Part shown: piece after piece, positions 14,893 through 58,423 of the stretch
Numbering within the stretch: position 1 is the first letter of the stretch
Layout of the letters: each line of letters begins with the position of its first letter
Assembly: GCF_016433145.1 (NCBI RefSeq)
Contig: NC_058136.1
Span: 73,188,345 to 73,252,344 of the forward strand
Reading direction: 5' to 3'
DNA from: Gracilinanus agilis
Taxonomy: Eukaryota
DNA: 64,000 bases
The notes under the pieces: model-generated
What the model saw: the letters and a program-made list of their open reading frames with translations, nothing else
Databases searched by the model: none
Told to the model about the DNA's origin: nothing
Made by a program: the position numbers and the translations under genes

Positions 14893-15392
14893 NNNNNNNN
14901 NNNNNNNNNNNNNNNNNNNNNNNNNNNNNNNNNNNNNNNNNNNNNNNNNNNNNNNNNNNNNNNNNNNNNNNNNNNNNNNNNNNNNNNNNNNNNNNNNNNN
15001 NNNNNNNNNNNNNNNNNNNNNNNNNNNNNNNNNNNNNNNNNNNNNNNNNNNNNNNNNNNNNNNNNNNNNNNNNNNNNNNNNNNNNNNNNNNNNNNNNNNN
15101 NNNNNNNNNNNNNNNNNNNNNNNNNNNNNNNNNNNNNNNNNNNNNNNNNNNNNNNNNNNNNNNNNNNNNNNNNNNNNNNNNNNNNNNNNNNNNNNNNNNN
15201 NNNNNNNNNNNNNNNNNNNNNNNNNNNNNNNNNNNNNNNNNNNNNNNNNNNNNNNNNNNNNNNNNNNNNNNNNNNNNNNNNNNNNNNNNNNNNNNNNNNN
15301 NNNNNNNNNNNNNNNNNNNNNNNNNNNNNNNNNNNNNNNNNNNNNNNNNNNNNNNNNNNNNNNNNNNNNNNNNNNNNNNNNNNNNNNNNNNN
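14893..15392. other. Assembly gap (500 N)
   Basis: N run; the round number suggests the true size is unknown. Confidence 0.99.
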
Positions 15393-16993: not shown

Positions 16994-17243
16994 CTGGAGA
17001 GAGAGAAAAGGGGGGGGGGGCGTGGAGCTGGAAGGCGGGCCTCTGCAGGGAACCCAGGCCTCTCTTCCTTGGTGGCTGTGGGACATTTTGTGCACTGGGC
17101 TGATCTCAGACTCCACAGGACAGGGCCTCAACACCAACCTGTATGGGCTGTGACCAGATCTGGGGGCAGGGCAGGAGCAAAAGAAAGGGAGCTTTCTCTG
17201 GGACACCCCTCCCGAGCTCCCCGGGGGGCTCACACAAGCTCAC

Positions 17244-17346
17244 ACAAAGCTGAAGGGGCTGTTGGTGATGAGAAACAGCTTCTTGCCATTGTCCACCAGG
17301 CGGCGCAGGACAGCATAAGTCTCCTCGCCCCGAAGGATGTACTTCT
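17244..17346 (-). CDS. NT5DC2-like exon 8
   Basis: [34 protein letters not shown](V), containing HAD motif II (LITNS); 103 bp; TAG acceptor, GTGAGC donor. Confidence 0.95.
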
Positions 17347-17561
17347 CTACAAGGCAGAAACAAAAGTACAGATGCAGGGAGGTGCCTGGCACAACCGAGG
17401 GAAGCCCCGAAAGCTGGGACGAGGGTCTCCCCAGAGATCTCCCGGGAACGGTAGTGCACCACTTGTGGGGCAAAGAAGAGACACATGGGGCACCAACAGG
17501 ACCGGCCCTTTTCGGTAAGTTCCAACCCGACCTACACGTTCTAGGGCCTCTGCAGACTCAC

Positions 17562-23470: not shown

Positions 23471-23620
23471 CTGAACAAGCCCAGTGGGAAGAGCATGGAA
23501 AAGACCACCGAAAGAAATCTTCTGAGAAGTCGTGCTACCTCGCCCTGGCCCCTTCCGGCAGGGCGACGGCTACGCCCCCTCCCCCCATGCCCAGCAAAGC
23601 GGCGAGAGAGGCCTCCTCAC

Positions 23621-23695
23621 CTTGGGGATGTCGTAGTGCAGTCCTCGGATGGCAAAGTTTGGCAGGTAATCATACTTTCGGATTCCTTCGGGATA
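23621..23695 (-). CDS. NT5DC2-like exon 3
   Basis: [25 protein letters not shown]; 75 bp; TAG acceptor, GTGAGG donor; in phase with neighbours. Confidence 0.95.
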
Positions 23696-24412
23696 CTACG
23701 GGGAAAGAGGAGGGAACAATTCATCGTCCGTGAGAAGGGAGCGAGCAGAAGAGGAGACACTGCCCTGTCGTATGTGGTTATCTCCCCACAAGGCACCAGC
23801 TCTAAGGGGTCTCAGGGTGGAGGCCCAGGGCCCTCGCCGGCCCATCGGCCTGGGTTAAAGGGTTTCTGCTTTCTGCTCTATAGGTCTTGGCCGGAAAACA
23901 GGCCGTGGGAAAAGCATCCGTCCGTTGACCGTTCTCATCGCTTTCAAAGCCCCAGCGTCACCCACAATCCAATGAGGGAGCGGCTGCTGCTTCTGCTCCA
24001 GCTCCAGAGGCACTTTTTTGAGGTCAGTGTTGACGCCAGAAGTTCTCATGTGCACATACACAGGAATTCCTGCACGCACATACCCTGTTTTGCAGATGAT
24101 GAAGCTGGCGTTCAGGGAGGCCAGTGCTTTGCTGTGGTCACAGTAACCCCAAATCCAGTCTGCCGCGCAAGGGCCACAGACATACAAGTATCCCACGTGT
24201 CCACGACGAGCAGGCGTCCAAAGGCTCGCTTTGCTTCCGTTTCGGGGGTTTCCATAACCTCCTCCCTTCCCCACGCCCCTCGAAGCCCGACCCGACTAGG
24301 CGACCCGCCCAACCAGACTCTGTCATCAGGCTGGAACCCTAACGGTCTGCGCTTCCCAAGGGAAGCGGGGCTGGCCCGGCCACTGACTGGGTGGGAAGAG
24401 GCCCCCCCTTAC

Positions 24413-24597
24413 CTTATACTGTTCCACCAAGATATCCCGGGCAGTGTTGTAAATCATGGAGTGGAGGGAGTTGGAGTAGAGGGCCAGAGTATAGTCGTAG
24501 TCGAAACCATAAATCTCAATGTCAGCCAGGCACACCTCGTTGTTGGCATAGATGGTGGAAGGGTTCAGGAGGTTGCACACACCCGGGGGGAGCAGAT
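24413..24597 (-). CDS. NT5DC2-like 5'-nucleotidase (HAD family), exon equivalent to NT5DC2 exon 2
   Basis: (D)LLPPGVCNLLNPSTIYANNEVCLADIEIYGFDYDYTLALYSNSLHSMIYNTARDILVEQYK. HAD motif I DxDxT (FDYDYTL) is intact. 185 bp, CAG acceptor, GTAAGG donor. Confidence 0.95.
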
Positions 24598-27507
24598 CTG
24601 AAAGCACGAAACACGGGACGAGAGCTACGTTCGGTCGGTCAGAGAAGACCGCGCTGCGAAGCGAGCACGCCCAATTCTGGGCCGGTTTATGACGAGAGCA
24701 TAGGCGGCGTGGCTAATACCCTGGCGTCTACTTCAGAGCAAACTGTTGGGCGGCCCAATAGCTTTCGAACCACGTGGCGGCCCTTAGCTCTGGAGGCCTT
24801 CGGGCCCACTTCAGGAAGTGGCGCCCCACGTGTTTTCGCTTTTCTTGTGGAGTGGCCACGCTTTTGCGATTGTGCCGCCAAGCCCTACTGGCATGGAGTG
24901 AGGCGGGAAACGAGGGGGCGCGGCACAGTTAAGTCTTCAGTTCCAAGACCCTGCCTCACATGGAATTTATTAACGGCCGGCTGGAAGGGCCTCCAACGAT
25001 AGCGAATCGCTAGCGATGTCACGGATACCTTTGGCTTCCCAAGCCCCTGGAGCGCGTTCTGAAAGCGCACTTCCAAACGTCCTGGCTCCAGAGCTCGGCC
25101 AACCCTTTCGCGTTTGACTTTTCAAACTCACGCGCTCTAAACAAAGCGTGCGACGCTGCACACTGGTACGCCCTTTCCTGCCGAGGTACACCTTCTCCCT
25201 TGACAAAAATCTTCCCAGCCTGTTGGGGCTCGAGAGAGAGAGCAGTTGGCTTACCAACACACCCTTTGGCGAGAGCCAGTACTGAGCAAAGGGAGACAGA
25301 GAGCAGCAACCAGGAAGGGAAGAACTGATCGGGCCCACCCCCACCCCGGCTCTCTCCATCCCCGAATGGCAGGGGGCCAGGGATGTGAGCTGCTGCCAGC
25401 CAGTCCTGTGCATTTCAGCCGAGGACTACGCGTGCCATCTGACATGCATCTGTGATGTATTCGCAGGACCCCCGACGAGCTGCTCAAGTAGAAATAGGCA
25501 CGTGCCCCGTCCTTCCCGGTACGAGCCAGACTGCTGGGGGGGGGGGGGGAATGTAGTCTCCTCATCAGGAGCCGGAGGGACTTTTGCCACTTTTGCCAGT
25601 GAACACAGAGAGGAATACCTCAAGGTGGAGGGGCTTGTACACGAGGCGGGGCTTGCGGTAAGGAAATCGTCAAGAATTCACTTAGAACTGAGCTGCCAGC
25701 CGAGTGGTTCCACATGGAGGTCTGAGGGAAGCCTCTTAGCCAAAGCGGGCAAGGCAGAGGAGACGAGCCGGCCTTCCCGACGCTCGGAGTCAAAGGGATG
25801 GCGAGGGCGGCTGCATTAGGTGGGCGTAGAGCAAAGGGACTTCCCTCCTTCCGAGTCCGGATTCCTAAATGACTCTCAAAGAAGTCAGACACTTCTTTTT
25901 GAGAAACAGAGTCCGACTTCCCAGAGAAGTCACTGGACTAAAGGGAACGCCTTTGCCTGGAGCCCTCCAGAAATGAAGGCCAGGTAAAGAGAATTTCAAA
26001 ACCAACTTGGGTCCTGGATGCCAAATACAAGCGGAGGCCCTGAACGAGGGAAGCCGAACCAGAGGCACCGACACCCACGAAAACTCAGCTAGAGGGTGTC
26101 ACCGTAAACACAGCACGGCAGAGGGAGGGCTCTCTATGACAGACGGACACACTAGGAAAAGGTGATTAGAATCCCAGACTCTACTAGCAAGCCTAGTCAA
26201 GTCACTTCACTCCTCTTCTTGCCTTGACTTTCCTTACCTCCAGAAGAATGGGGATGATAGGACGGACTATGGCCAGAGGCCACTCTGGTAACAGAGATGG
26301 CGCGTCTAATTGCTCCCAGATTATTGCCCTCCAGTTGCCAAGCCAAGAGCTTTTCGTGGCCACATCCTCATCAAACCCAATTCAAGAGCCTCTGTGCTGG
26401 GACTCATCATCCCGTGCTTGGCTTATACCTTCCCCTTTCTGCCCAGCACCCAAGTCACACGATTAACAAGGCAAATTCAACAGGACTGTCAGCCCAGCGT
26501 CAGGAAGTCCGGAATTCAAGTAATGTCTCTGTCTCGTGCTGCCCATGTGACCCTGGACTAGTCCCTTTCCTTCCCTGAGACCTGAAGGTACAAGCAGATT
26601 CCCAGAGGTCAGGAAGCAAAGGGAGCAAATTCAGGCCCAGCCTCTTGCTGTGGTTTGATTTGTTTCTAACGGCTGATAAGCTAAGCAGGTTTTTGAAGAA
26701 TGGCTTGCTTTCCCAACGTAGAAACTGGCTACAGAAGAGTCCGCAGCGGGCCAGCATGTGTGGCCCCCCTACGAAGCCCTACAGGCCCGTTTCAAAAACC
26801 AGAAAGAAAGCGAGCTGTCAGTCGTTCTCGAGCGGAGAAGAGGAAAATGAAGGCCCACAAAATGGCTCTTTCTGGAGATCTCTGCTCCGCGGTGACGGGC
26901 CTCCATTTCTGCGAGGACATGTCGTACGGCAGCTCGCCGCTAAGTCCCAAGTTGGCTTCTCAGTCAGGAAAGCGGCGGCGGGGAAGGAGGGAGCGGGAAG
27001 CAAGGGGCGGTCCGTCCTACCGGCCAGCAGCCAAGTGCCTAAGAGCACGAGCTCCTTCCCGTTCTTCATCTGCTTTTCCAAACACTTGGGCACGTGCCGG
27101 GCAAAAGCCAGAACCGGCCTGTTACAAACATCTTTCTATGATTCTGAAGCCTCCTCAGCAGAGTTCGGAACACTTGGCACAGGCAGAGAGCAGCGGAGCC
27201 CAGCCATTCGGGTTTTCCTCTCTACTTGGGTCTCCCGCGAGCTGTCAAAGCATCCTGTGGCCAAGTTAAAGAGGGCTTGCAGTGGAAACAGAACCATGAA
27301 ATCTGCTCCCTTGGGCAGGCGGCCTAATGACGCCCCCTGCTAAAATCTCATCCCAGAGAATGGTAGCATGGAGTTACAAAGGGAACCAATTCTACTGAGA
27401 TACACTTTAGCGTGAAAGCAAGTTTATGGACCCCAGGCCAAGGACGCCTGAGGCAGGGGGAGGGAATTGTCAGGGAGCTGCGTAGACCTTGGCCCCTGCA
27501 GAAAATA

Positions 27508-37099: not shown

Positions 37100-37900
37100 G
37101 TGCTCCAGGGCTCATTTCTCGCCTCTCGGGCACCCCTCGGGGAAAGGCCACCAGCCCTCACGGCCCCTTTCCGGCTAGGCATTGCGGCGGTGAAGGCGCT
37201 CAAAGGAGCGCCGACCCCCCCGAACCCCCCAAGCCCCGCCGTCAGGCAGACCCAGAGTCCCAGCCGCCGTCGGGCCCCCAGCAGAAAAGAGCAGCGCCGA
37301 GGCTTACCGGGGGTCCAGGGCGAGAGTGTCGAGCAGCTCGCTCCTCCGGTAGTCCCAGGCCAGCTCGACGGCCCCGATGTAGTACCTGCGGGTAGCGCCC
37401 AGGCCCCCTTCCAGGAGGCGCAGGAGGAGGGCGGCCAGGAGCAGGCGCCGCATGGCTCCCCGTGTCTGGGAACGCTGGCGGCTTCTAGCCGGGACCCTCC
37501 CCGAAGGAGCCACCAAGAGCAGCCCCTGCCCGAGCTCCAGTAGGAAAGGGAAGCCGGAGGCGGGCTTCAGCCCCTTTGCTGCTGCCAGAATACCTCAGGC
37601 GAGCCAAGCTTGCGGCAGAGGAGAGGAAGGAAGGGCTCGGCGGGCCGACAAGGCAGGAAGGAGAAGCGCCGGCCCACACTGGCCGCCGGCGCCCCGAGCC
37701 CCGCTTTCCACACGTCTTCCCGGAACACGCTGTGCACGGGGAGGGGCCCGTGCCCGGCCGAAGGTCCCCCAGCAGCACGGCTTGGGAAGGGCCGGCGGAC
37801 AAAAGAACCGGCCCGACGGCAACGCTGACCCCTGGCACGAAGCGCCTCAGTGGATGGATCGGGGCCCTCCGGCAGCTGGCGGGCGAGAGCCAGCCTTGCC
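37100..37900. promoter_or_regulatory. CpG island spanning F8 exon 1 and its promoter
   Basis: Dense CpG and GC-box-like motifs around the F8 ATG, judged by eye; boundaries approximate. Confidence 0.7.
37308..37453 (-). CDS. F8: Coagulation factor VIII, coding exon 1 (signal peptide and start of A1 domain)
   Basis: Translates MRRLLLAALLLRLLEGGLGATRRYYIGAVELAWDYRRSELLDTLALDP(R), matching the FVIII N-terminus (human ...ATRRYYLGAVELSWDYMQSDL). ATG context gccATG. It ends at a phase-2 GTAAGC donor, as human exon 1 does. 45 of 48 codons end in G/C. Confidence 0.93.
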
Positions 37901-39179: not shown

Positions 39180-40975
39180 TTTTTAGTCTCTTTTTTATTC
39201 AAAGTTGTTTTTTTTAAATTTTCCCAGTTACAGGTAACAACAAGTTTCGCCATTCATTTTCCAAATGTATCAGATCTGAATGGACTCCCTCCTCCCCTCC
39301 CCTCCCCCCCCCCCCGGAGATGGTAAGCAATTTGATCTGGATTATACATGTGTAATCTTGCAAAACATGCTTCCACATGGATCATCGCAAGAGAGTGATT
39401 GTATAGAGCCCCAAATGAACGGCTGTGGACGGCAGTCTGTTTTGATCTTGTGTGTTTGATGATCTATAATGCAAAGTCGAAGTTCTTTTGAGAGTAATTT
39501 CAGGATGGGCACTTTGCCGTCTCCCCAGAATCCAGACAACGAACCTGTTTGGTGGAGGCACCACGAAGATGCCTGGAGAGCCTTCACTGGATCATGAAGA
39601 TTCAAATTTGAACTATGGGGAGTGGAATGCATTTGTTTTGGATGTACGCTCTTATGCCAGTAGGGGGTTGTCCCAATTGGCTTTCTGTCAATGCGGCTAG
39701 TTTTATCCTTTTCTTGTATCCCCAAATTCCTGCAAGTTAGAAGTGGACTATGTTTAAGATCCACCGAAAAAAAAGATGGATCTTTTTTTGCCGGATCTCA
39801 GGGGGAAATGTGTTATTTGGAATTCGGGGGGTCCCATTTAAAAGTATTTGACAAACTTCCTGTGGACATGTGGGGGACTTTGAAACTACATTTTCCGTGA
39901 TCCAATGGGTTTCCGGTTTTGGACGTGGTGACGTCCCCAACGTATAGCATAGCTTAAATTCAGAGGTCGGCCTTGAGACGCTCTCTTTGGCCACTGAAGG
40001 AAGATGGGAGGAGATGAGGACGGGCGGCCTTTTTTGAAATAGTCAAGCGTGGTCGTATATATATATTTTTTTCTCAACATGGCCGTGGGGATTAAAATAT
40101 TAATTTTCCTCATAGTATCAGCCTTTATCATTTTCAATCGTTACAATCTGCATCTGACACCAACAGTTCTTTCTCTGGAGGTGGAGAGCGTTCTTGGTCC
40201 TAAGTCTTCTAGGGTTGCCCCAGATCAGTGCATTGCTGGGAGTGGCCAAGTTTCACAATATTGCTGTGATTGTACACGATGCTCTCCCGGTTCTGCTTCT
40301 TTCACTCTGCATCAGTCCATGCAGATCTTTCCAGTTTTCCCCAAATCATCCTGTTCATCATTCCTTACAGCCCAGTAGTATTCCGTCCCCAACATGCACC
40401 ACAAGTTGTTCAGCTGTTCCCCAATGGATGGGCGCCCCCTCACTTTCCAGGTCTTTGCCACCACAAAGGGAGCTGCTGGAAATACTTTTGTACACGCAGG
40501 GTCTTTTCCCTTTTTATGATCTCGTTGGGATACAGACCCAGCAGTGGTATTATGGGATCAAAGCATACCCTCTGGGCATCGTTCATTGCCCTCCGGAATG
40601 GCTGGATCAGTTCACAGCTCCACCAACAGTGCATTAGCATCCCAATTCCGCCGCACCCCCTCCAGCATTTATCGCTTTCCTTTGCTGCCCTCTTGGCCAG
40701 TCTGCTAGGTGTGAGGCGGTATCTCAGCATTGTTTTAATATGCATTTCTCTAATCAAGAGGGATTGAAAACGATTTTTTCATGTAATCATTGATGGCCTT
40801 GATTTCTTCATCTTGAAGCTGCTTGTTCATGTCCTTTGACCATTTGTCAGTTGGGGAATGCCTTGGATTCCTATGAGTTTGACTTAGTTCCTTATAAATC
40901 TGAGCCATTAGATCTTCATCAGAAAAAATTGTCACCAACATTTCCCCAGTTGGTTGTCTTCCTTCTAATCTTGGT
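39180..40975 (-). mobile_element. Older L1 3' end (ORF2 C terminus at about 40140-40975 and 3' UTR pieces), split by an unidentified insert
   Basis: Minus ORF IREMHIKTMLRYRLTPSRLAK...CWRGCG...HCWWSC...FDPIIPLLGLYP is homologous to the young L1 at 45188-45778. Boundaries approximate. Confidence 0.85.
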
Positions 40976-41339
40976 TACATACCAAAGGAGCATTTTTACA
41001 AAATGATGTTGCCTCAAATGGTTTCAGACCACACATCAGCTATCCCCGTGGTGCTCGGCTCACTGGCATTGTTTATTTCTCTCTCTTCCTTCTTTCCTTT
41101 CTTTCTTTTTCTTGATACTTTATTCAAAATTCTCCTGCCCGGGTCTCAGTTTTCTCTTCTGTAAAATAAGAGGGTTGGGCTCAGTGACTTCTGAGGTCCT
41201 TTCCCCCTTTAAAGTTACGAACTTACAAAGCTGTGACATTTGGGGGAGAAAAGCCACCACTAAAGCAAAGAGATGCTGGATTTATATAAGGAAGGTAGAG
41301 CTGTTTCAATGTTAGGAAAACTATGAACATCACTGACCA

Positions 41340-43796: not shown

Positions 43797-46670
43797 CTAG
43801 CAAAGAGACTCCAGCAAGTGATCAAGAGGATCATCCACCATAATCAGGTGGGATTTATACCAGGAATGCAAGGTTGGTTCAACATTAGGAAAACCATCCA
43901 CATAATTGACCATATCAACAGTCTAACAAACAAAAATCACATGATTAACTCAATAGATGCTGAAAAAGCCTTTGACAAAATACAGCATCCATTCCTACTG
44001 AAAACACTGAAAAGTATAGGAATAGAAGGACCTTTCCTAAAAATTATAAACAGTATATACCTAAAACCATCAACAAACATCATATGCAATGGGGATAAAT
44101 TAGAGCCTTCCCAATAAGGTCAGGAGGGAAACAAGGATGCCCATTGTCACCTCTATTATTCAACATAGTACTAGAAACACAAGCAGTAGCAATTAGAGAA
44201 GAAAAAGAAATTGAAGGTATCAAAATAGGCAATGAGGAGACCAAGCTATCACTCTTTGCAGATGATATGATGGTCTACTTAAAGAATCCTAGAGAATCAA
44301 CTAAGAGGCTGGTAGAAATAATCAACAACTTTAGCAAAGTTGCAGGATACAAAATAGATGCACATAAACCATCAGCATTTCTATATATTTCCAACATAAC
44401 TCAGCAGCAAGAGGTAGAAAGAGAAACACCATTTAAAATCACCCTAGACATTACCTATTTAGCGCCATACCTATCAAATTACCAAAACACTTCTTTACTG
44501 AATTAGGAAAAACTGTAACAAATTTCATTTGGAATAACAAAAGATCAAGAATATCAAGGGAAAAAATGTGAAGGAAGGGGGCCTAGCAGTACCAGATATT
44601 AAACTATACTCTAAAGCAGCGGTCATCAAAGCAATATGGTACTGGCTAAGAGACAGAAGGGAGGATCAGTGGAATAGACTTGGGGTAAATGATATCAGCA
44701 AGAAAGTGTATGATAAACCCAAAGAGCCCAACTTTTGGGACAAAAATCCACTATTTGACAAAAACTTCCAGGAAATTTGGAAAACAATATGGGAGAGATT
44801 AGGTCTAGATCAACATCTCACACCCTACACCAAGATAAACTCAGAATGGGTGAATGACTTGAATATAAAGAGGGAAACTATAAATAAGTTAAGTGAACAC
44901 AGAATAGTATACTTGTCAGATCTCTGGGAAAGGAAAGATTTTAAAACCAAGCAAGAGTTAGAGAAAATCACAAAATGTAAATTAAATGGTTTTGATTACA
45001 TTAAGCTAAAAAGCTTCTGTACAAACAAAAACAATGTAGCCAAGATCAGAAGGGAAACAACAAATTGGGAAAAAATCTTTGTAACAAAAAACTCTGACAG
45101 GGGCCTAATTACTCAAATATACAAGGAGCTACATGAATTGTATAAAAAAAATCTAGCCATTCCCCAATTGATAAATGGGCAAGAGACATGAATAGGCAAT
45201 TTTCAGGTAAAGAAATCAAAACTATCAATAAGCACATGAGAAAGTGTTCCAAATCTCTAATAATTAGAGAAATGCAAATCAAAACAACTCTGAGGTATCA
45301 CCTCACACCTAGCAGGTTGGCTAAAATGAAAGAAGGGGAGAGTAATGAATGCTGGAGGGGATGTGGCAAAACTGGGACATTAATGCATTACTGGTGGAGT
45401 TGTGAACGGATCCAACCATTCTGGCTGGCAATTTGGAACTATGCTCAAGGGGCTATAAAAGACTGCCTGCCCTTTGATCCAGCCATACCATTGCTGGGTT
45501 TGTACCCCAAAGAGATCATAGATAAACAGACTTGTATGAAAATATTTATAGCTGAGCTTTTTGTGGTGGCAAAAAACTGGAAAAGGAGGGGATGCCCTTC
45601 TATTGGGGAATGGCTGAACAAACTGTGGTATATGCTGGTGATGAAATACTATTGTGCTCAAAGGAATAATGAACTGCAGGGATTCCACGTGAACTGGAAA
45701 GACCTCCAGGAACTGATGCAGAGCGAAAGGAGCAGAGCCAGAAGAACATTGTACACAGAGACTGATATACTGTGGTAAAATCAAATGTAATGGGCTTCTG
45801 TACCAACAGAAAACAATGACCCAGGACAATTCTGAGGGATTTATGGTAAAGACGCTGCCCACATTCAGAGGAAGGACTGCAGGAGAGGAAACACATAAGA
45901 AAAACAACTGCTTGAACGCATGGGTTGAGGCGGACATGATTGGGGATGTGGACTTGAAACGACCACCCCAATTTGGAAATAAGTCGTGATTGATGACACA
46001 TGTTAAAACCAGTGGAAATGTGCATCAACCATGGGGGGGGGTGCGGGGGGTGAAGGGGAAAGTAGGAGCATGAAGCATGTAACCAGGTTAAAAATGAATA
46101 TTAATAAATGTTTAAAAATTAAAAAAAAAAGGAGGGAAGCCACACACATAAATAGTAGATTCTAAGCAGCATTTTTAACAAGGTTCAGATAGAACACTGA
46201 ATGGCTCCCCAGTACCAGTAAAGTTTATGCATCTTGAAGCCTAAAGGCAGGAAACAAGGAGAGAAGGAAACTTTTGAGCCTAGGAATGCTGCTGAAATAG
46301 CCTATAGACTAGGCCTAAGTCCAATGGTAAAGGAGCCCTTATTGCCAATGAATAGATACTCAGGAAATTGAAAAGTGAACCCCAACCTACTTTGGTTAAG
46401 GAGATCTCAAGTGAACTGCCTAAGCAAGAGAATCATTTTCACAAGAATTTTTATCTACAGACTTTCCATTAGCTGACTCAGTGGCAACATTTTCCCTACA
46501 AAGTAAGAGGCAGGATAGTGAAGTAGTTAAAAGGTGAAGGAAAGCCATTTTTTAAATCGCAGCATCTCGGCCTCCCCAAAGGGGGTGTGTGAGAGCTTTT
46601 AAAATTAGGGCAAGTTAGAAGCATTTTTAATCTGGAGAGAATTTTTTGAGTTTTAAAAATCGTCTGGAAG

Positions 46671-47766: not shown

Positions 47767-47964
47767 CTCCAATCACCGCGGACGGCACAAAGTTCTTGGG
47801 AGTCCAGCTGCCAAGATACACGACTGGAGAAACAGTCATTGCTCACGGGCAGGCCGAGCTCGTCCTGCTGCCTCAACTCTTCTGTGTCTTCAGCGTCGGC
47901 CCGATCAAACTACGGAAGGATCAGAAACATCGGGGAGACGCCATTCTTGTTTGTTGGTTGGTTT

Positions 47965-48110
47965 TTTACTTTTTAAACCCTTCACTTCTGTGTATTGGCT
48001 CCTGGGTGGAAGAGCGGGAAGGGTGGGCCGTGGGGGTCAAGGGACTTGCCCAGGGTCACCCGGCTGGGAAGTGTCTGAACCCAGGACCTCCCGTCTCTAG
48101 GCCTGAGAGA
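47965..48110 (-). mobile_element. SINE1_Mdo-like SINE
   Basis: ttttaaacccttcacttctgtgtattggc...gggacttgcccagggtcacc...ctctaggcct. Confidence 0.8.
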
Positions 48111-48749
48111 TGCCATTTTTGAAAGGGGCCTCCCCTACAAGGGCTCCTGTTCTCGTTTTGTTTGGGCTGTGGGCTTGGGGGCTTGGTTTCCCCTTCAGTC
48201 TGGCCTCCAGGCTCCTGGGCTCTCTGCTGGAACACGTGGCCGTGGATGTTTAGGAAACAAACGCTAGGCCGGTTGAGAAGTCGGTGCCAGTCTAGCCCCG
48301 TCTTTGAAATCCCTTTCCTACGCCCCCGCCAGGCCCCTGGACCCCTGGTCAAGTTTTCGTGCTTATGCGGACAGAGGGGGCAGGGGACCGGCCAACATGC
48401 TGGAGGCCTCCTCATGACGGGAGGGCCGCCAGGGAAGCGGCCCCATCCAGGCCCCCCGAATGGCCCCGCTATCTCGCGCGAGTTCCCCAGATCACAATGG
48501 GCTGCGGCTCAGCAAAGTGGAGCAAGGTCACGCTGTCATTCCCAGGGCCAAGGCTGGCAGAACACAATGTCTACACGGTGTCCTCACAGGGCGTCCCTCC
48601 GTCCCACCAGCAGCCGAGGTCATCCGGCCCTCGAAAAAGATACCTAATTGCCGCCACAGTAACCATCCGCGCAGGGAGCGGACCGGCCTGGACCGAAAAG
48701 AAACAAATGTTTGGGGGCCCGAAAGGAACGGAAGGCCTGATAGCAGGGG

Positions 48750-50617
48750 AAAAGCTACTTTTCGAGATAGAAGAGGCCGGCTGGAGCGAGGCCTATAAAG
48801 GGGAGGCGCGCCGAGGGGCCAACACTGAGCTTCCTGAGCGGCTTGGCCTGGAGAGGTGGCTGTGGTGAGAGCCCGGGCCCCGAGCTCGCTGGGGAGGGGG
48901 AGAGCTTGCCGCACTCGGGCCTTTCTCTCCAGAGCTCGTCTGCCAGGCCAGCCCAGAGGGGGCCTGCCCACTGCTCGCTCCCCACAGGCTCCTCTCGCTC
49001 CTTTGCTGCCTTCCTCGCCCTCCCTCTTTCTTGCCGTGCCCTGGCCTCGCTTTGGCCCTCGTCTCGAGCACCTCTGGGTGCTGGCTGGGCCCCGTTTGCT
49101 TGCGCAGTGATTGACAGCCTCGGCCTCGAGGTGGGGTTTCGGCAGGGGGGGATGGGCACGCCAAGCTGGCGTCTGTATGTTTCTGTTTTGAAAGGACCCG
49201 CGAGAACGCGAGCTGCTGGGGACGGACAATCGGCCACGATGCACTGATGTCAGGTGAAAAAGCTGCATGTAAGTCCAGACCGCGGGGGCCAGAGAGAGCC
49301 TTTCTGCCCGCCGCCCGCCCGCCCGCAGGTCTGGGGGCTGCCCAGAGTCACGTAACGGGCCCGTGGGCTTCCATGAACGGAACGGGGCAGGCTAGGCCCG
49401 GGGGGGAGGGGGCAAAAAAGGAGGCTGGAGCACACCCGGCCACGCAGGAGTTGGGAGTTTCCCTGGAAGTGAATGAGTGAGTGAGTGGGGGGGGAGGAGG
49501 AGAAAGAGAGACAGCCAGAGACACAGAGAGACAGGAAGGGGAGAAAGGAGGGAGACAGAGAGAGAAAGGGAGGGAGGGAGGGAGAGAGACAGAGACAGAG
49601 AGGGGCAGGCAGAGGGGAAGAGAGGCAGGGAGGCAGAAGAGCCAAATGCAGTCTTGGCAAGCGGACAGAAACAATGGGATTTGCTTCAAGTTGTGATGTT
49701 GCCAGTGACCAGTCTCTTGACTGGGCCTCTGACGGCTGGCGGGGCAATTTCCGGCCAGTGGTTTTCTGCCGCTATTCCGTACTTCGGCCTTCCCCGCACT
49801 GTCCTCCCAGCCCCCTGCTGTTGTGTTTGTTTGACTGGGAACCTCCGGGATGCCATGGATCGGCCTCGGTGCGCCCTCTACCCTTCGGCCCCGTTTGGTC
49901 CCCAGATGTGAGAGGCGGGAAGCTGGGCTCCTCTGGCAGGGCTAGCGTTGGCGGCTTGGCTGGGGGCTGATTTCTGGGAGTCTTTAAGAGGGTGTCTTCA
50001 GGGCAGTGGGCTGGGGAGAGAGACTTCCTGGAGGTCCTTTAAAGCGTCCCCTCGAATTCTGCACCTCAGCAGCCTCGGGTCCGCTGCCGCCCCGCAAGCC
50101 AGAGGGGGGAGCCAAGCCGGCGGGTTGGCGAAGCCCGGAGGGCCCCGGAGAGAGCGGCAAGGCCCCCGTGGTGGTGGTGGTGGTGGTGGTCCAGGTGAGC
50201 AGCGCCGCGATGGTGTCCAGAGCCAAGAGGCCCGCGCCCCTGCTGAAGGGAGAGGAGGCCCAGCTCTCCCTGGAGCACTGGATCCAGAAGAAGGGCCAGA
50301 GCCCCTGGCAGCCCGGCTTCTTTAAGTCGGAGAGCCCGGCGGCGGCGGCTAGCGAGGCCTACGCCAAGTTCTGCGCCGAAGCCAAGCCGAGCAAATGCCA
50401 GCGCGACGCCGGAGCCGCCTGGGCCCTGTGGCAGGCCTGCGTGGACGGCGGCCAGCTGCTGGCCCAGCGGCAGGAGGAGTGCGCGGCCTGGCAGACCAAG
50501 AGCCTGGAGCTGGAGTGCAAGTGTGCCCAGCTCCAGCAGGAGAAGCAGAGCCTGGAGGAGGCCTGGGAGGCCGAGAAGCTCCGGGCGGCCTTGGGGCCCC
50601 CGCCGCCCCCGCTGCCC
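48750..50617 (+). promoter_or_regulatory. CpG island and candidate TATA promoter upstream of the Gag-like ORF
   Basis: TATAAA at 48794-48799 in GC-rich context; ccgccc repeats at about 49310-49325; CpG density continues through the ORF. Confidence 0.4.
50210..50617 (+). CDS. Unrecognised protein-coding ORF, retroviral Gag N-terminus-like plus coiled coil; 3' end lost in assembly gap
   Basis: gccgcgATGG Kozak start; 136 stop-free codons up to the gap; 128/136 end in G/C, and the bias starts abruptly at this ATG. Motifs W-x5-SPW and KPSK-x5-GAAWALWQA, then a heptad-like stretch (LLAQRQEE...LEEAWEAEKLRAAL) and PPPPPLP. Coding status is well supported; the Gag assignment is from recall. Confidence 0.75.
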
Positions 50618-51117
50618 NNNNNNNNNNNNNNNNNNNNNNNNNNNNNNNNNNNNNNNNNNNNNNNNNNNNNNNNNNNNNNNNNNNNNNNNNNNNNNNNNNN
50701 NNNNNNNNNNNNNNNNNNNNNNNNNNNNNNNNNNNNNNNNNNNNNNNNNNNNNNNNNNNNNNNNNNNNNNNNNNNNNNNNNNNNNNNNNNNNNNNNNNNN
50801 NNNNNNNNNNNNNNNNNNNNNNNNNNNNNNNNNNNNNNNNNNNNNNNNNNNNNNNNNNNNNNNNNNNNNNNNNNNNNNNNNNNNNNNNNNNNNNNNNNNN
50901 NNNNNNNNNNNNNNNNNNNNNNNNNNNNNNNNNNNNNNNNNNNNNNNNNNNNNNNNNNNNNNNNNNNNNNNNNNNNNNNNNNNNNNNNNNNNNNNNNNNN
51001 NNNNNNNNNNNNNNNNNNNNNNNNNNNNNNNNNNNNNNNNNNNNNNNNNNNNNNNNNNNNNNNNNNNNNNNNNNNNNNNNNNNNNNNNNNNNNNNNNNNN
51101 NNNNNNNNNNNNNNNNN
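50618..51117. other. Assembly gap (500 N) truncating the Gag-like ORF
   Basis: N run. Smaller gaps are at 9880-9918, 18041-18111 and 30156-30233. Confidence 0.99.
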
Positions 51118-52075
51118 GAATTTTTCAGCTATCCGAATAATCCGCTGGTGGTTTGATTCGCCTGGCACCGAGTTCATTGAGGTAGTAGAATCATTATCAC
51201 AGGCCATAGTGTTGGACTCCTCAGGACCCCATTTTTTGGCCAAGAGACCGAAGTGGTTTGCCATTTCCTTTTCCAGCTCATTCTTCATGTGAAGGACTGA
51301 GGCAGAGAGACTCAGCGCCTTCTCCAGGGTCACACAGCTGAAAGAACTCACAGCTCCCCAAGCCTGGCACCATTCACTCTGCCACCCCGCCTTGGCCTAC
51401 CCATAAGGAATTCATTTCTCCAGTATTTAAGTCTGTTGTTATTTCTAGAAACAGTTATATCCCCAGAACCCCCCCAAGACTTTATACGTTCTGTTGTTAC
51501 TTGAAATGAAATGTCCCTCTCTGTCTCCTCTGACTGGCTCTTAAATATCACAAATAATTTGATCTTAGCGAAGCCCCTAAAGAAGCAAATTTCAAAATAA
51601 GAGTTTCCTTTCTTTCCTCTGTCCCAGGCCTAGGAAATTAGACACGAGATGATATTTGATTTGTTTCAACTGGCCAGTGTCTCCCGGCACCCCCAACTCC
51701 CCACCCTCGTCGCGATACACACAGCCATGGCCGAAACGATTGTCTCGTGGTGTGCTCTGAGCCCTTCTCTCTACCTCTTGAGCAAGAGGTGGGGAACATG
51801 TTTCCTTATTAGTCCTTGGGAATCCCATTTGTTCATGCTACTGTGAAGAGTTCAGCCCACTGATATTCTCTCACGTTTTCTCCCGTAATTTGTTCCTCTA
51901 GGCCCCAGTTTATGGCCGCCACCTTTGATTCCTGTTCTTCGGCACTTCAAGAAGAGCACCAAACAGTTTTCTGTCTCCTCGGGGCTCATTTCGTTTACGA
52001 TTCGTTTTGTTCTTCAGTCTTGTCCAACTCTGCCTGATCCCATATTGGGTTTTATTGGCCAAGATCTTGTTTTCT
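51118..52075 (-). mobile_element. Probable old LINE ORF1-like remnants
   Basis: Coiled-coil-like fragments and an RR-x-RII-x-E-like motif at 51120-51170; weak. Confidence 0.3.
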
Positions 52076-52084
52076 TTCTCCAGC

Positions 52085-52235
52085 TTGTGTTACAGATGGG
52101 GAAACTGAGTCAGACAAAGTGAAGTGCCTTGCCCAGGGTCACACGGCTACTAAGTGTCTGAGGCCAGTTTGGAACTCGGGTCCTCCTGACTCTAGGCCTG
52201 GCTCTTTATCCACTGCACCATCTAGCTGCCCCAGG
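52085..52235 (-). mobile_element. MAR1/MIR-core SINE
   Basis: ttacagatggggaaactgag...tgcccagggtcacacggct...ccatctagctgcccc. Similar core-SINE pieces occur near 6620, 7070, 29380, 32520 and 56510. Confidence 0.75.
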
Positions 52236-52358
52236 ACTTGATGAGGACTCATTTAATCTTCCCTCCCAATCCCATTTCCTTTTATCCCCCCGCCCCCAGA
52301 GTAAAATGTATTTCTGTGCCCAACTTGGGTGTTTGTGTGTCTGCATGTCTCTCTGTTT

Positions 52359-52360
<2 letters not shown>

Positions 52361-52404
<44 letters not shown>
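52361..52404. repeat. (GT)22 microsatellite
   Basis: Read directly. Confidence 0.97.
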
Positions 52405-52405
<1 letters not shown>

Positions 52406-52699
52406 TGTTTTTGATCAGGTCAAATGATAATGAGGTTTAAGCGTCAGCCACTCCTCCCATCGCCCACCTCCTTGTATCTGTGTCGGCTTGGGTGCCCTGG
52501 TTGGCCGTAGCCCTGCCATCCCCCACCCCCCCAGGTGTAGAGATCCCTCTTTCTGTCTCCGTTCTGAAGATCATTGGGACAAAGTGATCTATTTCGGCCT
52601 TGGCACATTGGGCTCCCTCAGTGGGATGCCTCTAATCGTGACAGGCCCCCAAGGGGAGCTTGGCTAGATCAGCTGCTCATATTTGGATGGGAACGGTTT

Positions 52700-54250
52700 C
52701 CCTTTGCTTAGTTGTCCATGGAGCCCTGGCTTTGTATTTCAGAGTTTCTCCTTGGCTCTAGCCTTCTCGTGGAATGGTTAGGAGTCATCTTTCAGTCAAG
52801 AGCCATTGCCACCATAACAGTTTTGCTGGGGAGGTTACCCTTCCGGACTGTTACATTTCCAGGTGTCTGCTCTTTAAGAGTGGCGGCTGCTAAATTGGGG
52901 CTCCTCCTTTCTGGCCACTTGCGGTATTTTTGCCCCACCCTGGATTTTGGCTATGATATTCCTGGGGGCTTTCTTCCTTTTTCCACTTGGTCCTCTGTTC
53001 CTACGAGATCCAGGCAGTTTCCTTTCCTGGTCCCGTGCTCTCGGTGCTCAGGAGATCTGCCGAGTCTCAAGTTTTGATCTCTCCTTGATCTCTTTTCCAG
53101 GTCAGCCGTTTTTGCTCCAATAACTCAGACTTTGGAGTTTGCTTGAATATTTCTTGTTGCCTCGTGGAGTTATTGCTGAGGGTTTTGCACTTCTCGTGCC
53201 AAGCTCTCGATGCCCTTCCCGATTCTTTCTCCCGTGTTTTCCCTTTTTGTTTCATCCAGCACCGACGCTCCATTCACGAGAACGTTTTTTAGCTCTGCTT
53301 TTCGACTCCTGTTTCGTCTCTCCCGGCAGCGGTCAAATTTGTGCCCAAGTTGGGTTTGCGTTTTACTCTGGGCCTTTGCTCATAGATGTTTCTTCCGCGT
53401 CTGCGTCTGTAATAAAAGCCCCTTCTTGCAGCCCGCCTGCAGACTCGATGTTCGGCCCGGGCCTTTTTGGGAGGAAGGTCTAGGCCCTGGTGTCTGAAGC
53501 CCTCCTGCCTGACTCCTCTTCTGAGCTGCGGGGGAACGAGGACTTGCTGTGACTTGGGAGGGGGGGGCGGCAATTTGCCAGAACCAGGATAAGGTCTGGT
53601 GTGTGTTTTCGATGCGTTTGGAGGAATGCGTGGAAGGGAGCTCGCCCCACTGCTTCCTCTAGGTCGGCCTTGGCTTGTCATTTGCGAGAGACCGGTAGCC
53701 GGACCATGGGGCAATCTGGAGCGTAATAAATTTAGAAAGGCGGCTGGACATGCCAAACGACTTGGGCCCCATTTGATCCCTTCTGAAACCTGAGCTTGCT
53801 GAGCGGGGAGTGACATAGACAGGCCTGGCCTTTGGGCAGATCACGTGTGCAGCAGTGAGATGGAACACAGATTGGGCAGGCGGGCGGGCATGCTGGAGCC
53901 AGGGAGGCCAGGGAGATGGGAGAGAAGCACAAGGTGGAGCCGGGATATCTAGAATGGTGAGGAAATGGAAGAGCATTATGCCTGGGTTGGAGGGGGAGAG
54001 CTAAAGGGCTCTCTTTGGGGCTTGGGGGTTTTCTGATGCATGCAGCCTAGAGGCTTCTGGATAGCCCCAGGCACCTGGGAGTAGAGGGCCCAGCTTCCAC
54101 TTTGGGCCTGGCTGATTGGCTTAGCAGAGGAGCCTGATTAGATGCAGAGCCAATCAGTGGCGAGGGCGCTGTGAGCGCAGGCTGGGGGTGGAGCCTCGAG
54201 TTGCTTTCGAGTTTTTGAGTGTCTTTTGCAGAGGAGCACGGATAGCTTAG
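52700..54250 (-). mobile_element. Degenerate L1 ORF1 with probable 5' UTR
   Basis: Minus strand KTADLEKRSRRDQNLR (L1 ORF1 hallmark) near 53050-53120. The assignment of the GC-rich upstream part as 5' UTR is tentative. Confidence 0.6.
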
Positions 54251-54769
54251 GTTTCTCCCCGAGAAAGCTGCTCAGCCGACTAGGACGTTTGGGTCTTTGG
54301 ATTTGGGATCATCTGGGTAACGTGAGATGTCACTGCTGGCGTAATGAGGCCCGGGCAGGGTACCTTTGGCTGGCACGAATGACAGACTCTGGAGGTCTTT
54401 CTTATTAGGCAAACCAGTACCCATTGAGCCATGATAGCTATCAGTGGCAGACGGGGAAACCATACAGATGGTTACGTCGAAGAGTCATGGTCCGGCCTCA
54501 CCCAGGCAGCCAAGTCCGGGTTACAGGCAAAGCTCATCTTTTTATGCCTCCCGTGACTTGGTAAGGAAGTGGGGAAGAGGCCAGAATGCGAATTCTTGGA
54601 GACTTTGGGTTGGGGCAAGATGTCAATATGCTCAGAATACTAATCAGGAAGCCCCTGCCAGAGAGGACCGGATTCCAGTTGCATGCTGGGACTAGACTTT
54701 ACGAAATTTGGCGTGCCCGCTCGTTCTTCCTTTTTGAAGGAGATGGTCAGGACTCGTGAACTCGGGAGT

Positions 54770-54890
54770 CTTTTTTTTTTTTTTTAAGCCCTTGTACTTC
54801 AGTGTATTGTCTCATAGGTGGAAGATTGGTAAGGGTGGGCAATGGGGGTCAAGGGACTTGCCCAGGGTCACACAGCTGGGAAGTGGCTGT
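54770..54890 (-). mobile_element. 5'-truncated SINE1_Mdo-like SINE
   Basis: Poly-T then aagcccttgtacttcagtgtattg...gacttgcccagggtcacacagctggg. Confidence 0.8.
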
Positions 54891-57289
54891 CGGGAGTCTT
54901 TTTGATTTTGCCACAATAGCTTGTTTTTGCCAGGAGACCCAGGGGGACGTCATTTCTCTCATCGTTCTTCGGTCTTGGCAATCCCTTCGGAGCCTCAGTC
55001 TCTTCGTTTGGAAAATGGGCCTTTTGGTTTTGGTCCTGTTGACTTGGAAAAACCCAGAACCACCGAAGTAGTCATAAAGCCAAATCTTTAATCAGGACAG
55101 AGACAGACAGGCCCTTTGTAAGTGGCCGCCACACGGAGCCCAGTGCGAAATACGGCAGAGTTAGAAATCGGGGGCTCTGGGACAGTGTCTCCTCTCTAAG
55201 AGAATCACCATCTGGATGATCCTCCAAAGAACAGTAGAACTTAGGGACTTAGATGCCTTTTGGGGGGGAAACGAGTACAGCGGACATCCACTGACAGTTT
55301 ACAAGCAGGCTTGGGAGAGAGGCAGTAGCCAGAGGCTGGGGAAACAATGCTGGGCTTCTTGGGAAAGGATCTCTGACACCACGGGGGAAGCTTCGTAATG
55401 AAGGGTTTGCGCACTTCTGTGAGGACAGATCCCTCATTCAGTCTGAGACTGAGTCAGTTTGGGACGTCCCCTAAAGGCAAGCTCTCGAGGGAAATGGGCA
55501 AACGTGGGGCTTCCAGAATTCATGGTGCCAGGACCATCCACCTCCACTACCAGGCTTGTTAGCTGGGAGGCTCCGTTGAGATAGCGTGAAGTGCTGGAGG
55601 ATGAGCCAGTCCTAAGTAATGCAGCAGAAGTGACCTTAGAGGTCATCTAAGCCAGGCCACCATTTCACAGCCAGAGAAAGGCAGACAAAACGGCACGGGA
55701 TGCAGCCCCCTGCTGGTAACCCCGCGTCGGGAAGTCAAACCCGCCTTCTCCTCCTTTTGGCTTCACAACCAAGGCAGTGCCATTCTGTCTGTGACCTGAG
55801 CAGCTTGCCAGAGACCTAGCTGGAGAGCCGAGGGTTCAGAGTGCCCGGCTCGCCTTCTCTGTCACTTTGGGTAACGGAATGGCTAGGCCTCGGTCTGCTC
55901 GGCCGACCGCTTGGAATATTGCGCAGTGAGTGACTTTCTTGTTTGGGGCGTGTTTTGAGAATGCCACTGATTGTCTTCCCACTCCCATTCGTTGTCATTT
56001 TCTGGATGCCCCCAAGGGGCCCAGTCTGGAAGGTCCTTGTCTACACAAGCTCCATAAGCTGTGCTTGGAGGAGTCTAGTGCTTGGCCCCTCCTCTCCCCA
56101 AGAGCCCTCGTGTGTCTAACTTGCCAGGTTTTCCCGGTGTAGCCGACAGCCCGAGTCATGACTGACTCGGCTTCATCTTCAACGGGCCCCTTCCCCCGGA
56201 GCAGCGTCACCTGCCCGGGGTCGCTCTCGGAACCTCTTGTGTGTGGCTGGCAGGCAGGCAGGCAGGCAGGCAGCTAGTTTTCCAGGAACCTGGTGTCTTG
56301 AAAGCCAGATGCTGTTGAAGCCTAAGAGGCAGATTAGAAAGCTGGGCCTCTTGCCTTTGCTTCTCAGCCCTCCTCCGTTGAGAGACGAGCATTTAGATCT
56401 TGGCAAACGTGTTCCTGAACAGCCTTAGGATACAAAAATATTTGGAGTAGCAAAGAGCCGAAAACAGATTCGGTGCCCATCGGTTGCAGAATGGCTGAAC
56501 AGATTGTCCGAGAAACTCAGGGACACTCGAATAAGGGAGCGGAAGCAGGAAAACGAGTCTGAGGCCAGACTCGAACTCGGGAAGATGAGGCTTCCTGACT
56601 CAAGGCCTGGCACTCTCTCCACTCTGCCACCTCCTTGCTCAAAAGCGACGTGTGATCACAATGGCCAACCTCGGCCCCGAGGAGGGGGATGAGGGAATGG
56701 GCCGCCTTCCTTTCCTTGGAGCACTAGAGTTGCCTGGGTGGTTCTTGTTGCCAAAGTTGGCCCTTCTTTTTTTTTCTTGTGGGAAGGAAGGGAAGTGGGT
56801 GAAGTGACCTTCCTCTGAATTCAGCCCTCCCAAAGCCTCGATGGCCTTTCTGATCGTTGCCCAATTGAACTTGGTTAGAATAGGATTCAGTTACACGCGG
56901 TGTCGTAGTCAGTGATTCCATCTGTCCGTAAAGAACCCTGTGTTGAAGACAATTTGAATCCAGGACAGGGAAGGTGATGGTGTTGGCAGAGATGTCTGGG
57001 AGGAAGGTGGAAAGCCCCGCCTTGCCGTTAGCTCCTGTTTCCATGGGGCTTCCAACAGATGTCGGCCTCGTTTTACAACGGAGACCCAGGCTTGGAGAGA
57101 TGAACCGCCTTGTCTAGGGACGCCCAGCCGGGAAGCGTCTGAGGCCTGGCGCAGGCCTTCCAGACTCTCTGTAGGACGCCTGCCATGGGAGCAAGGCTGG
57201 CCGCAGAAGAAAAGAGAACTAGGCCCCGGGTGAGGGGAATCACCCACTTGGTTTCTGCTTCTCTCAAAAGTCCCTTAACAATCACACAG

Positions 57290-57375
57290 ATTGGCTGAGG
57301 TGACTGGCCGTCCTATGCGTGTCGTGGGCTGGTATCATTCCCACCCCCACATCACTGTGTGGCCGTCCCATGTTG
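57290..57375 (+). CDS. BRCC3: BRCC3 (BRCC36 K63 deubiquitinase) internal exon with JAMM motif
   Basis: (R)LAEVTGRPMRVVGWYHSHPHITVWPSHV(D); JAMM HxH...S..D residues intact; CAG acceptor, GTAAGT donor. Confidence 0.95.
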
Positions 57376-58268
57376 GTAAGTAGCGATGGAGCAGGTACTT
57401 GGCAGTGTGGATTCATCGAGGCGGCCTCCGACGACAGAGATGGGGGAGAGGTTCACGCGCATCAGGACTCTGACCTGGTTTTTCTGCAGTGGCTGCAAAG
57501 CCACTGGGGCAAGGCTGGCTTTTGCCTCGGGTTTTTTCCTTGCTGACATGGAGCCATCCTCTGGCCATGGGGTCCCCGAGAAGGAGACAGAGACACAGAC
57601 AAACGGGCCCCCGAGCTGGCCGGCCCAGGAGGCAGCCCCACGGCCCTAACCCTAAATTCCCACCTGAGCTACGACCCAGAGCAGCTGATTAGGAGACGAT
57701 AGATGAGACGGATACGGCTCCCCTTTGCTCAGTGGCTCACTGGGCCGGCCAGGAGGGCAGTTGAGAAGGTGACCTGGGCTGAAGCCCCCCACGGTAGCAG
57801 TGATCTCCACTGGCCCCCGAGTTCACGTTTGACCCGAAGACCTCAAGGGATGGAGAAAATACAGGCTAGCTGATGGGGGAGGAGGGAGGCCCACTGACTG
57901 TCCTTAAAGGCCACCTGCCAGGGCTCCCGTTCCCTGATGGAGTCATCTCTGAGTGGTGACCGGCTAAGGAAAAGCAGGCTCTTGTATGTCAGCTGAGAGC
58001 AGGGGCCTGCCTTGGGTCCTTGGCAGTGGAGTCGTTCTTTTTGGTCTCTTTAGGAGCTCTCCTTCGCCTGTAACAGAGTTCCAAATGGAGGTGGACTCCA
58101 CGAGAGCCTTCCTCCAGACCTCTGTCTCGGTGCCGCTCCCGTTCCTTGGAATCCATAACGTGGCACCATTGTAACCCTTCACCGAGCCTCTCCAAGAACT
58201 TGCCGAGAGACTGCCAGTGGACTTGCCAGTGGACGCTTAGGTTTTCTTTGTGCTTTTGGCTTCTGTAG

Positions 58269-58357
58269 ATATTCGCACTCAGGCCATGTACCAGATGATG
58301 GATGAAAGCTTTGTGGGACTGATTTTCTCCTGCTTCGTGGAAGACAAAAACACCAAG
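58269..58357 (+). CDS. BRCC3: BRCC3 internal exon
   Basis: (D)IRTQAMYQMMDESFVGLIFSCFVEDKNTK; 89 bp; TAG acceptor, GTAAGT donor; in phase with the previous exon. Confidence 0.95.
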
Positions 58358-58423
58358 GTAAGTGGAGCCGCAGGAAAGTTGCCATTTTGAAGTCTGTAAG
58401 GGATTCAAATCTCCATTTGAGCC

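Follow-up and report, generated by a model that had tools for sequence, protein, structure and literature searches.

In the marsupial Gracilinanus agilis, a stretch of 64,000 nucleotides (assembly GCF_016433145.1, contig NC_058136.1, positions 73,188,345 to 73,252,344 of the forward strand; hereafter the window, to which all positions below refer unless a protein or another element is named) contains an open reading frame (ORF) on the plus strand at 50210..50617. As judged from its sequence and from that of its homologues, this ORF represents the beginning of a genuine marsupial gene that had not been described before and is located between F8 and BRCC3. It probably constitutes the 5' part of a single-copy gene, intronless in wallaby, the front of which appears to have been co-opted from an epsilon-like retrovirus, namely from the Gag region preceding the capsid. 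The first 136 codons of this candidate gene, from the ATG to the edge of an assembly gap, are visible in the window, and their assignment is based on the ORF itself, on a bias in codon phase and on orthology to a wallaby protein.

The gene status was assessed by an exhaustive HMMER (phmmer) search of 1.84 billion representative proteins with the 136-residue ORF. This search yielded a single strong match, a protein of 433 residues from the tammar wallaby that is annotated as "uncharacterized" (P0001; E 9e-52, residues 1-133). Both sequences share the start codon and can be aligned without insertion or deletion over the first ~130 residues with an identity of 69-71% (71% over 129 residues), increasing to 78% in the core encompassing residues 21-80. 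P0001 carries three RefSeq XP accessions, which is at most a hint of a host transcript, and the listing of its gene is confined to the newest wallaby annotation. The wallaby coding sequence (CDS) consists of one exon of 1302 bp with its own stop codon, i.e., 433 intact codons, and the 5' end of F8 is 5.7 kb away in divergent orientation. The sequence is present as a single copy within the window and the database holds a single wallaby protein. An earlier note on this DNA, made from the letters alone, had anticipated a syntenic orthologue in another marsupial and no eutherian counterpart. Both expectations hold, as P0001 is encoded head-to-head with F8 and, P0001 aside, neither a eutherian nor any other host protein was found among the representatives searched.

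The origin of the N-terminal part is indicated by six weaker matches from the same search (E 4e-6 to 2e-4), each aligned N-terminus to N-terminus, which derive from the geckos Paroedura picta and Gekko kuhli and from one contig of the European Nucleotide Archive (ENA). When the marsupial pair was compared by hhalign with eight gecko and ENA Gag proteins, a match with 97.8% probability and an E-value of 9.9e-13 over 101 columns was obtained, and BLASTP of P0001 against P0004, the Gag protein encoded by the ENA contig (element L001), gave an E-value of 2e-13. The Gag-homologous stretch, as delimited by hhalign and phmmer, covers residues 7-110 (50228..50539, plus strand) and comprises an N-terminal head domain and the start of a coiled coil. 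Across all nine aligned sequences 14 columns, occupied by W, P, G, F, K, C and A, are invariant. These are situated in the head domain and thereby outside of the coiled coil, so that the match is no coiled-coil artefact. The identity between the marsupial proteins peaks exactly where the Gag relatives are conserved, and the homology to Gag fades at about residue 110-125. Read from these alignments, residues ~7-110 of the ORF descend from the pre-capsid N-terminus of retroviral Gag.

Searches of reference collections with the 136-residue ORF gave no family in Pfam at E-values up to 10 and no match among PDB sequences or in PHROGs. The profile of the gecko Gag proteins retrieved coiled-coil noise alone from the PDB, word-index protein searches with P0001, P0004 and a mixed alignment added P0012 only, and a metagenome scan with the N-terminal motif revealed no further relatives. 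The earlier view that the protein is unlike the RTL and PNMA families is in agreement with these data, as the ORF has no Pfam match and P0001 has none except for a weak zinc ribbon. The proposal that a retroviral gag was co-opted as a host gene is retained for the N-terminal ~110 residues, which are Gag-derived, but not for the remainder of the wallaby protein, which is unrelated to Gag.

The relatives are true Gag proteins, encoded in the gag slot of gag-pol-env elements that are flanked by long terminal repeats (LTRs). L001, which originates from an ENA metagenome assembly and spans its whole contig, encodes gag (P0004), followed by a pol of 1264 residues with protease, reverse transcriptase (RT) and RNase H as well as integrase and by a third ORF of 773 residues. 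In element L002 (8179-18998), LTRs of 1046 bp with 99.9% identity surround gag (P0005) and a pol of 1265 residues, which is 77% identical to the pol of L001. Repeats of 1068 bp enclose gag, pol and env-like regions in element L004 (7728-24168), and L003 (7946-16731) is a gag-only element between identical LTRs of 903 bp that is inserted inside a sulfotransferase gene on the opposite strand. The LTR pairs of the gecko family are 99.5-100% identical, and gag and pol form long open frames in L001 and L002. The family looks recently active. The AlphaFold2 (AF2) model of P0004 has a coiled coil at residues 64-218 followed by a beta-hairpin and a helical domain at residues 258-457, and its top matches in the PDB are all retroviral capsids with that of murine leukaemia virus (MLV) in first place. 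Furthermore, the relatives possess a motif resembling the major homology region (MHR) and lack the myristoylation glycine, and P0004 has a Gly/Arg-rich tail. A CCHC zinc knuckle was found neither in any relative nor in P0001.

A transfer in the opposite direction, by which an old host domain would have been taken up at the front of gag by the gecko retrovirus lineage, might explain why the sharing is limited to the first ~110 residues, with the rest of the wallaby protein unrelated to Gag, and why the domain is outside every family of Gag described in Pfam or the PDB. However, all non-marsupial homologues, i.e., seven proteins of two geckos together with one ENA contig, are in the gag position of LTR elements, and no host-type orthologue from other vertebrates is present among the 1.84 billion representatives. 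The marsupial gene is moreover intronless, and its homologous part takes in the Met start and is continued by the coiled coil that Gag has at this place too. Capture of a host domain by the virus is considered unlikely.

The genes on both sides are represented in the window. The coding part of F8 exon 1 was identified at 37307..37453 on the minus strand by phmmer against the PDB (factor VIII N-terminus, E 9.7e-11). It is oriented head-to-head with the candidate gene at a distance of 12.7 kb, and the same divergent arrangement is present in wallaby with the shorter distance mentioned above. At the other side, two exons of BRCC3 (BRCC36) are located on the plus strand, both matched by phmmer to BRCC36 chains in the PDB: the first at 57282..57374 encodes residues ~104-134 including the JAMM motif (E about 2e-16) and the second at 58259..58363 encodes residues ~132-166 (E about 2e-14). 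The position between F8 and BRCC3, which had been proposed before, is therewith established. The ORF is cut by a gap given as a run of 500 N (50618..51117); runs of 500 N are found three times in the window, at 14893, 30643 and 50618. The remainder of the gene does not follow beyond the gap, as tblastn with wallaby residues 130-433 gave no match anywhere in the window. BRCC3 codons 1-103 were not seen after the gap in 51118-57280 (recognition by eye only), and there is no second CpG island between the gap and the BRCC3 exons. Because the rest of the gene, BRCC3 codons 1-103 and a second CpG island are all unseen beyond the gap, the true length behind the N run probably exceeds 500 bp by far and amounts to several kb of GC-rich sequence.

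These observations also bear on the idea that the ORF is no gene of its own and belongs to the BRCC3 transcription unit as an upstream ORF or an alternative 5' exon. Both share a strand, a distance of just 7 kb separates the ORF from the BRCC3 exon encoding residues 104-134 downstream, and neither BRCC3 codons 1-103 nor a second CpG island are visible in between. The wallaby model, in contrast, is a stand-alone CDS with its own stop, and more than 10 kb downstream of it are devoid of any called gene. In addition, the N run probably represents far more than its nominal length. An origin as part of BRCC3 is for these reasons very unlikely.

No traces of a complete provirus were found at the locus. 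The sole direct repeat of at least 100 nt within 40-64 kb of the window is a pair of 116 nt at 47962-48077 and 54774-54889 (83% identity) that brackets the locus and has a core similar to short interspersed elements (SINE/MIR-like). An LTR pair around the ORF was ruled out, the repeat at 47962/54774 being SINE-like and only ~120 nt in length, and the earlier statement that no LTR is near the ORF stands. Similarity to pol or env of related retroviruses is absent from the whole window, as is nucleotide similarity to the gecko elements.

The reading frame itself carries a strong coding signal. The start at 50210 is in good context (GCG-ATG-G, with a purine at -3 and G at +4) and is followed by 136 sense codons, counted from the ATG, until the first N at 50618. 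G or C is found at 93, 70 and 128 of the 136 first, second and third codon positions, respectively, and among 20,000 shuffles the highest G/C count in any phase was 114. The excess of GC content at third positions (GC3) over the mean of GC1 and GC2 amounts to 0.34, compared to 0.28 for the runner-up among all stop-free stretches of at least 50 codons in the window. Positions 1 and 2 of the ORF have 68% and 51% GC, and the non-coding flanks have 62-66% GC. The openness of the frame contributes little: the ORF region has 72% GC, the remaining frames and the reverse strand are likewise stop-free across the stretch, and 136 stop-free codons are estimated to arise from base composition with a chance of ~10%, which makes openness alone unremarkable. 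The ORF is beyond chance because of the phase-3 bias and the homologues and not because of its openness.

The count of 128 G/C-ending codons behind a Kozak-type ATG, as well as the context of this ATG, were reproduced from the earlier note, and the likeness in codon signature to F8 exon 1 was confirmed with a GC3 of 0.94 for both. Its further statement that the upstream sequence lacks the bias is correct in that the contrast is real, but it is less absolute than claimed, as 50 of the 68 upstream in-frame codons, none of which is ATG, end in G or C (74%). Similarly, the described Pro-rich linker exists as a run at residues 130-136 (50597..50617, plus strand, read directly at the gap edge), but it comprises the last seven residues before the gap only and is missing from the wallaby orthologue at that position. 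Phase bias and the syntenic wallaby orthologue together agree with the classification as coding sequence, unlike a decayed transposon.

The same data are opposed to the assumption that the ORF is left over from the gag of an old provirus, was never domesticated and stayed open by chance in GC-rich DNA. Open frames are common at 72% GC, and only the 5' part of the gene is visible. Yet the phase-3 GC bias is far above that of the shuffles, the start is conserved, 129 codons align without any indel to an intact ORF of 433 codons at the syntenic wallaby locus, and the identity is greatest exactly at the Gag-conserved positions, which renders such a relic highly improbable. The GC3 of 0.94 compared to 0.51-0.61 for the gecko gag genes rather points to a long residence in the host with constraint at positions 1 and 2.

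To judge from layout and fold matches, the donor lineage seems to be epsilon-like or intermediate rather than spuma-like or class III. A single TAG, with no additional stop, separates gag from pol in the common frame of both genes in L001 and L002, a layout at odds with the separate expression of pol expected of spumaretroviruses. In a BFVD search with the P0004 model, Gag of walleye dermal sarcoma virus (WDSV) was the best match (E 4e-5), followed by Gag of walleye epidermal hyperplasia virus 2 (WEHV-2; E 1e-3), and foamy virus Gags were found at ranks 18-19 (E 0.04-0.07). The RT of the relatives matched MLV RT in the PDB with an E-value of 8e-74 versus 5e-59 for foamy virus RT. For chicken OVEX1, an amber codon between gag and pol in the same frame, a non-myristoylated Gag with an N-terminal coiled coil, an MHR and the lack of a zinc knuckle were reported (PMC2717909). 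As the traits of the gecko relatives equal this combination, the donor is termed epsilon-like or intermediate here. The lack of a Cys-His knuckle is common to foamy viruses and OVEX1-like elements and hence does not discriminate between them. An assignment of the relatives as foamy-like was rejected on account of the gag-TAG-pol layout, the MLV-like capsid and the matches to walleye virus Gags. An assignment as lokiretroviruses, for which a PF00523 match was reported (PMC7947760), was set aside as the third ORF of L001 (773 residues) has no PF00523 match, although this is not decisive.

In the epsilon-like group, which encompasses WDSV/WEHV, snakehead retrovirus (SnRV), OVEX1 and the tuatara element SpeV, it is the OVEX1 trait set that the gecko relatives share (PMC2717909); the gecko elements are likened to OVEX1, SnRV and WDSV by layout, description and fold matches. 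The head at the N-terminus and the coiled-coil start of the gecko Gags are the parts to which the marsupial ORF aligns, whereas the marsupial locus differs from this group in lacking LTR, pol, env and capsid as well as a basic tail.

Foamy virus Gag is composed of an N-terminal domain followed by a coiled coil, has no Cys-His knuckle and ends in a Gly/Arg-rich tail. The general plan is thus the same, with a small N-terminal domain plus coiled coil, no myristoylation and no Cys-His boxes, and yet neither the Pfam family Gag_spuma nor the solved foamy Gag domains were matched by the ORF or its relatives in searches by Pfam, PDB sequence, PDB profile or Foldseek. Least probable of all, therefore, is a spuma-like (class III) Gag with a capsid, acting as capsid-forming protein or as Fv1-like restriction factor: the order of N-terminal domain and coiled coil, the lack of a Cys-His knuckle in the relatives and the Gly/Arg-rich tail of P0004 would fit, but these searches detected no foamy counterpart, the foamy Gags rank behind those of the walleye epsilonretroviruses, the relatives have, besides gag-TAG-pol in one frame, a capsid similar to that of MLV and an MHR-like motif, and the wallaby orthologue has no capsid-like segment. 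The class III or spuma-related origin favoured in the earlier note is abandoned on these grounds, and the hosts of the relatives are geckos instead of the turtles and crocodilians it had named.

The AF2 model of the ORF contains helices at residues 21-28 and 43-56 and a long helix, predicted to form a coiled coil, at residues 64-127 (50399..50590, plus strand), for which the predicted local distance difference test (pLDDT) is above 90 at residues 91-120. This coiled coil is located where the gecko Gag model has its own (64-218). A Foldseek search of the PDB with the ORF model gave chance-level matches only. Beyond the Gag part, the coiled coil of the wallaby protein extends to about residue 220 and is followed by an acidic and Pro-rich stretch that looks disordered. 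Residues 395-414 of the wallaby protein fit the RanBP2-type signature W-x-C-x2-C-x3-N-x6-C-x2-C exactly, and the scores of this finger are weak, with 16 bits for PF00641 against a cut-off of 27 and E-values of 0.08-0.1 for the RBM10 and RBM5 fingers in the PDB. The resemblance to the RanBP2-type fingers of RBM5 and RBM10 is therewith that of a weak alignment, and it concerns a region that is not visible in the window. A second C-x2-C...C-x2-C arrangement is present at residues 303-324 of P0001 and is maybe a degenerate second zinc ribbon. A capsid-like segment or an MHR was not found in the wallaby orthologue, which does not align to Gag past about residue 125. As the wallaby orthologue is devoid of a capsid region, the ideas of a capsid-forming protein and of an Fv1-like function are unsupported; the homology ends at ~110-125, and the wallaby C-terminus is made up of the seemingly disordered stretch and the putative RanBP2-type finger.

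Several points weigh against co-option of a Gag N-terminus as the front of a marsupial gene. The visible ORF is confined to 136 codons, after which it is cut by the gap, and the Gag-like share of the wallaby protein is one third only. The head domain is modelled with a pLDDT of 55-64 and has no structural match. Protein searches revealed no other annotated marsupial orthologues, and the gene is documented in two species. Finally, the direction from virus to host rests on the distribution of the homologues.

Under the co-option that we favour nonetheless, the N-terminal pre-capsid Gag of an epsilon-like retrovirus would have become the first ~110 residues of the host protein. The LTRs, pol and env would have been lost together with the portion of gag that encodes capsid and nucleocapsid, and the codon composition would have drifted to that of the host locus. 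The protein may assemble via a parallel coiled coil into a dimer or oligomer and thereby display at least two of the small Gag-type head domains. In wallaby, such an oligomer would be tethered via the seemingly disordered stretch to the putative C-terminal RanBP2-type zinc finger. RanBP2-type zinc fingers are RNA- or ubiquitin-binding modules, and the part of retroviral Gag upstream of capsid generally serves targeting and partner binding. In the preferred mode of action the protein would be a Gag mimic. It would engage either the coiled coil of related, incoming Gag or the partners that the N-terminus of the ancestral Gag had, and would thereby divert assembly or trafficking of related retroviruses. 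This role as Gag decoy is speculative and rather doubtful. Alternatively, the Gag part might have been re-used in a cellular scaffold acting through the zinc finger. The full scenario, an old co-option before the split from macropods in which Gag head and coiled coil were fused to a RanBP2-type finger and serve as decoy or as RNA- or ubiquitin-binding scaffold, is a tentative possibility.

Known host genes of retroviral origin offer partial parallels. Fv1 is a mouse restriction factor derived from the gag of the class III element MuERV-L; it is single-copy and intronless, multimerises via an N-terminal coiled coil and retains a capsid-like C-terminal domain that recognises incoming cores. The marsupial gene is likewise single-copy and intronless, goes back to the gag of a true retrovirus and encodes an N-terminal coiled coil, whereas Fv1 differs in its capsid-like domain and class III source, with the wallaby orthologue having no capsid part and the donor being epsilon-like. 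The proposed decoy mechanism has a precedent in enJS56A1 Gag of sheep, the N-terminal (matrix) part of which co-assembles with and misroutes the Gag of Jaagsiekte sheep retrovirus (JSRV), resulting in a trans-dominant late block. enJS56A1 is, however, a whole betaretroviral provirus with full-length Gag, while the marsupial gene is a Gag fragment fused to unrelated sequence and is known from sequence alone. ARC, PEG10, the RTL/SIRH and PNMA genes and the SCAN domain also are host genes built from Gag pieces, and the wallaby gene is loosely paralleled in its architecture by the SCAN domain, a dimerisation module of Gag origin that is linked to zinc fingers. These derive from the capsid of Ty3/gypsy-like elements (Metaviridae), in contrast to the marsupial ORF, which is homologous to the retroviral pre-capsid part and has no Pfam match.

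Further features of the window were noted. The 5' end of the gene is embedded in a GC- and CpG-rich block (48000..50617) that is, by its composition, a candidate promoter or CpG island, with a GC content of 0.59-0.74 and a CpG observed/expected ratio of mostly 0.4-0.7; DNA after the gap has a GC content near 0.47-0.52 and a ratio of mostly 0.2-0.6. Within this block and upstream of the gene, the plus strand has a purine-rich (GA/GGGA) low-complexity tract at 49400-49640. Directly 5' of the ATG, at 50168..50200 on the plus strand, a (GGT)n run was read directly, behind which CAG|GTGAGC resembles a splice donor. The donor-like sequence ends 10 nt ahead of the ATG and may be due to chance or be a piece of an intron in the 5' untranslated region. 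Between F8 exon 1 and the gene, remnants similar to ORF2 of the long interspersed element LINE-1 and other decayed repeats were recognised by eye at 40300-41000 (minus strand) and 44000-46100. Three stop-free stretches of the minus strand (17243-17557, 23573-23695 and 24329-24712) match successive positions of the 5'-nucleotidase profile PF05761 with E-values of 1.5e-13 to 5e-5. These look like exons of an NT5C2/NT5DC-like gene inside the expected intron 1 of F8 and on the F8 strand. An Rfam search of the whole window gave no match.

To our knowledge, few virus-derived genes are known in marsupials and nearly all Gag-derived host genes known so far retain capsid. PEG10 and a few captured env genes are among the virus-derived genes of marsupials, and SIRH12 and PNMA-MS1 were described in addition (PMC3158469, PMC3789554). 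With the gene reported here, the host genes assembled from parts of retroviruses gain a rare marsupial example, and a lineage-specific gene would enter the otherwise well-studied F8-BRCC3 interval. It also illustrates that GC-rich, gap-prone CpG islands can conceal such genes from annotation. With head and coiled coil as the only parts kept, it would widen the range of retrovirus pieces that can be re-used, and it would be a dated trace in the marsupial germ line of a donor lineage that is now found in reptiles, fish and birds. If the proposed origin is true, this would be the first known host gene that stems from the region ahead of the capsid in the Gag of a true retrovirus and would constitute evidence for a past entry of epsilon-like retroviruses into the marsupial germ line.

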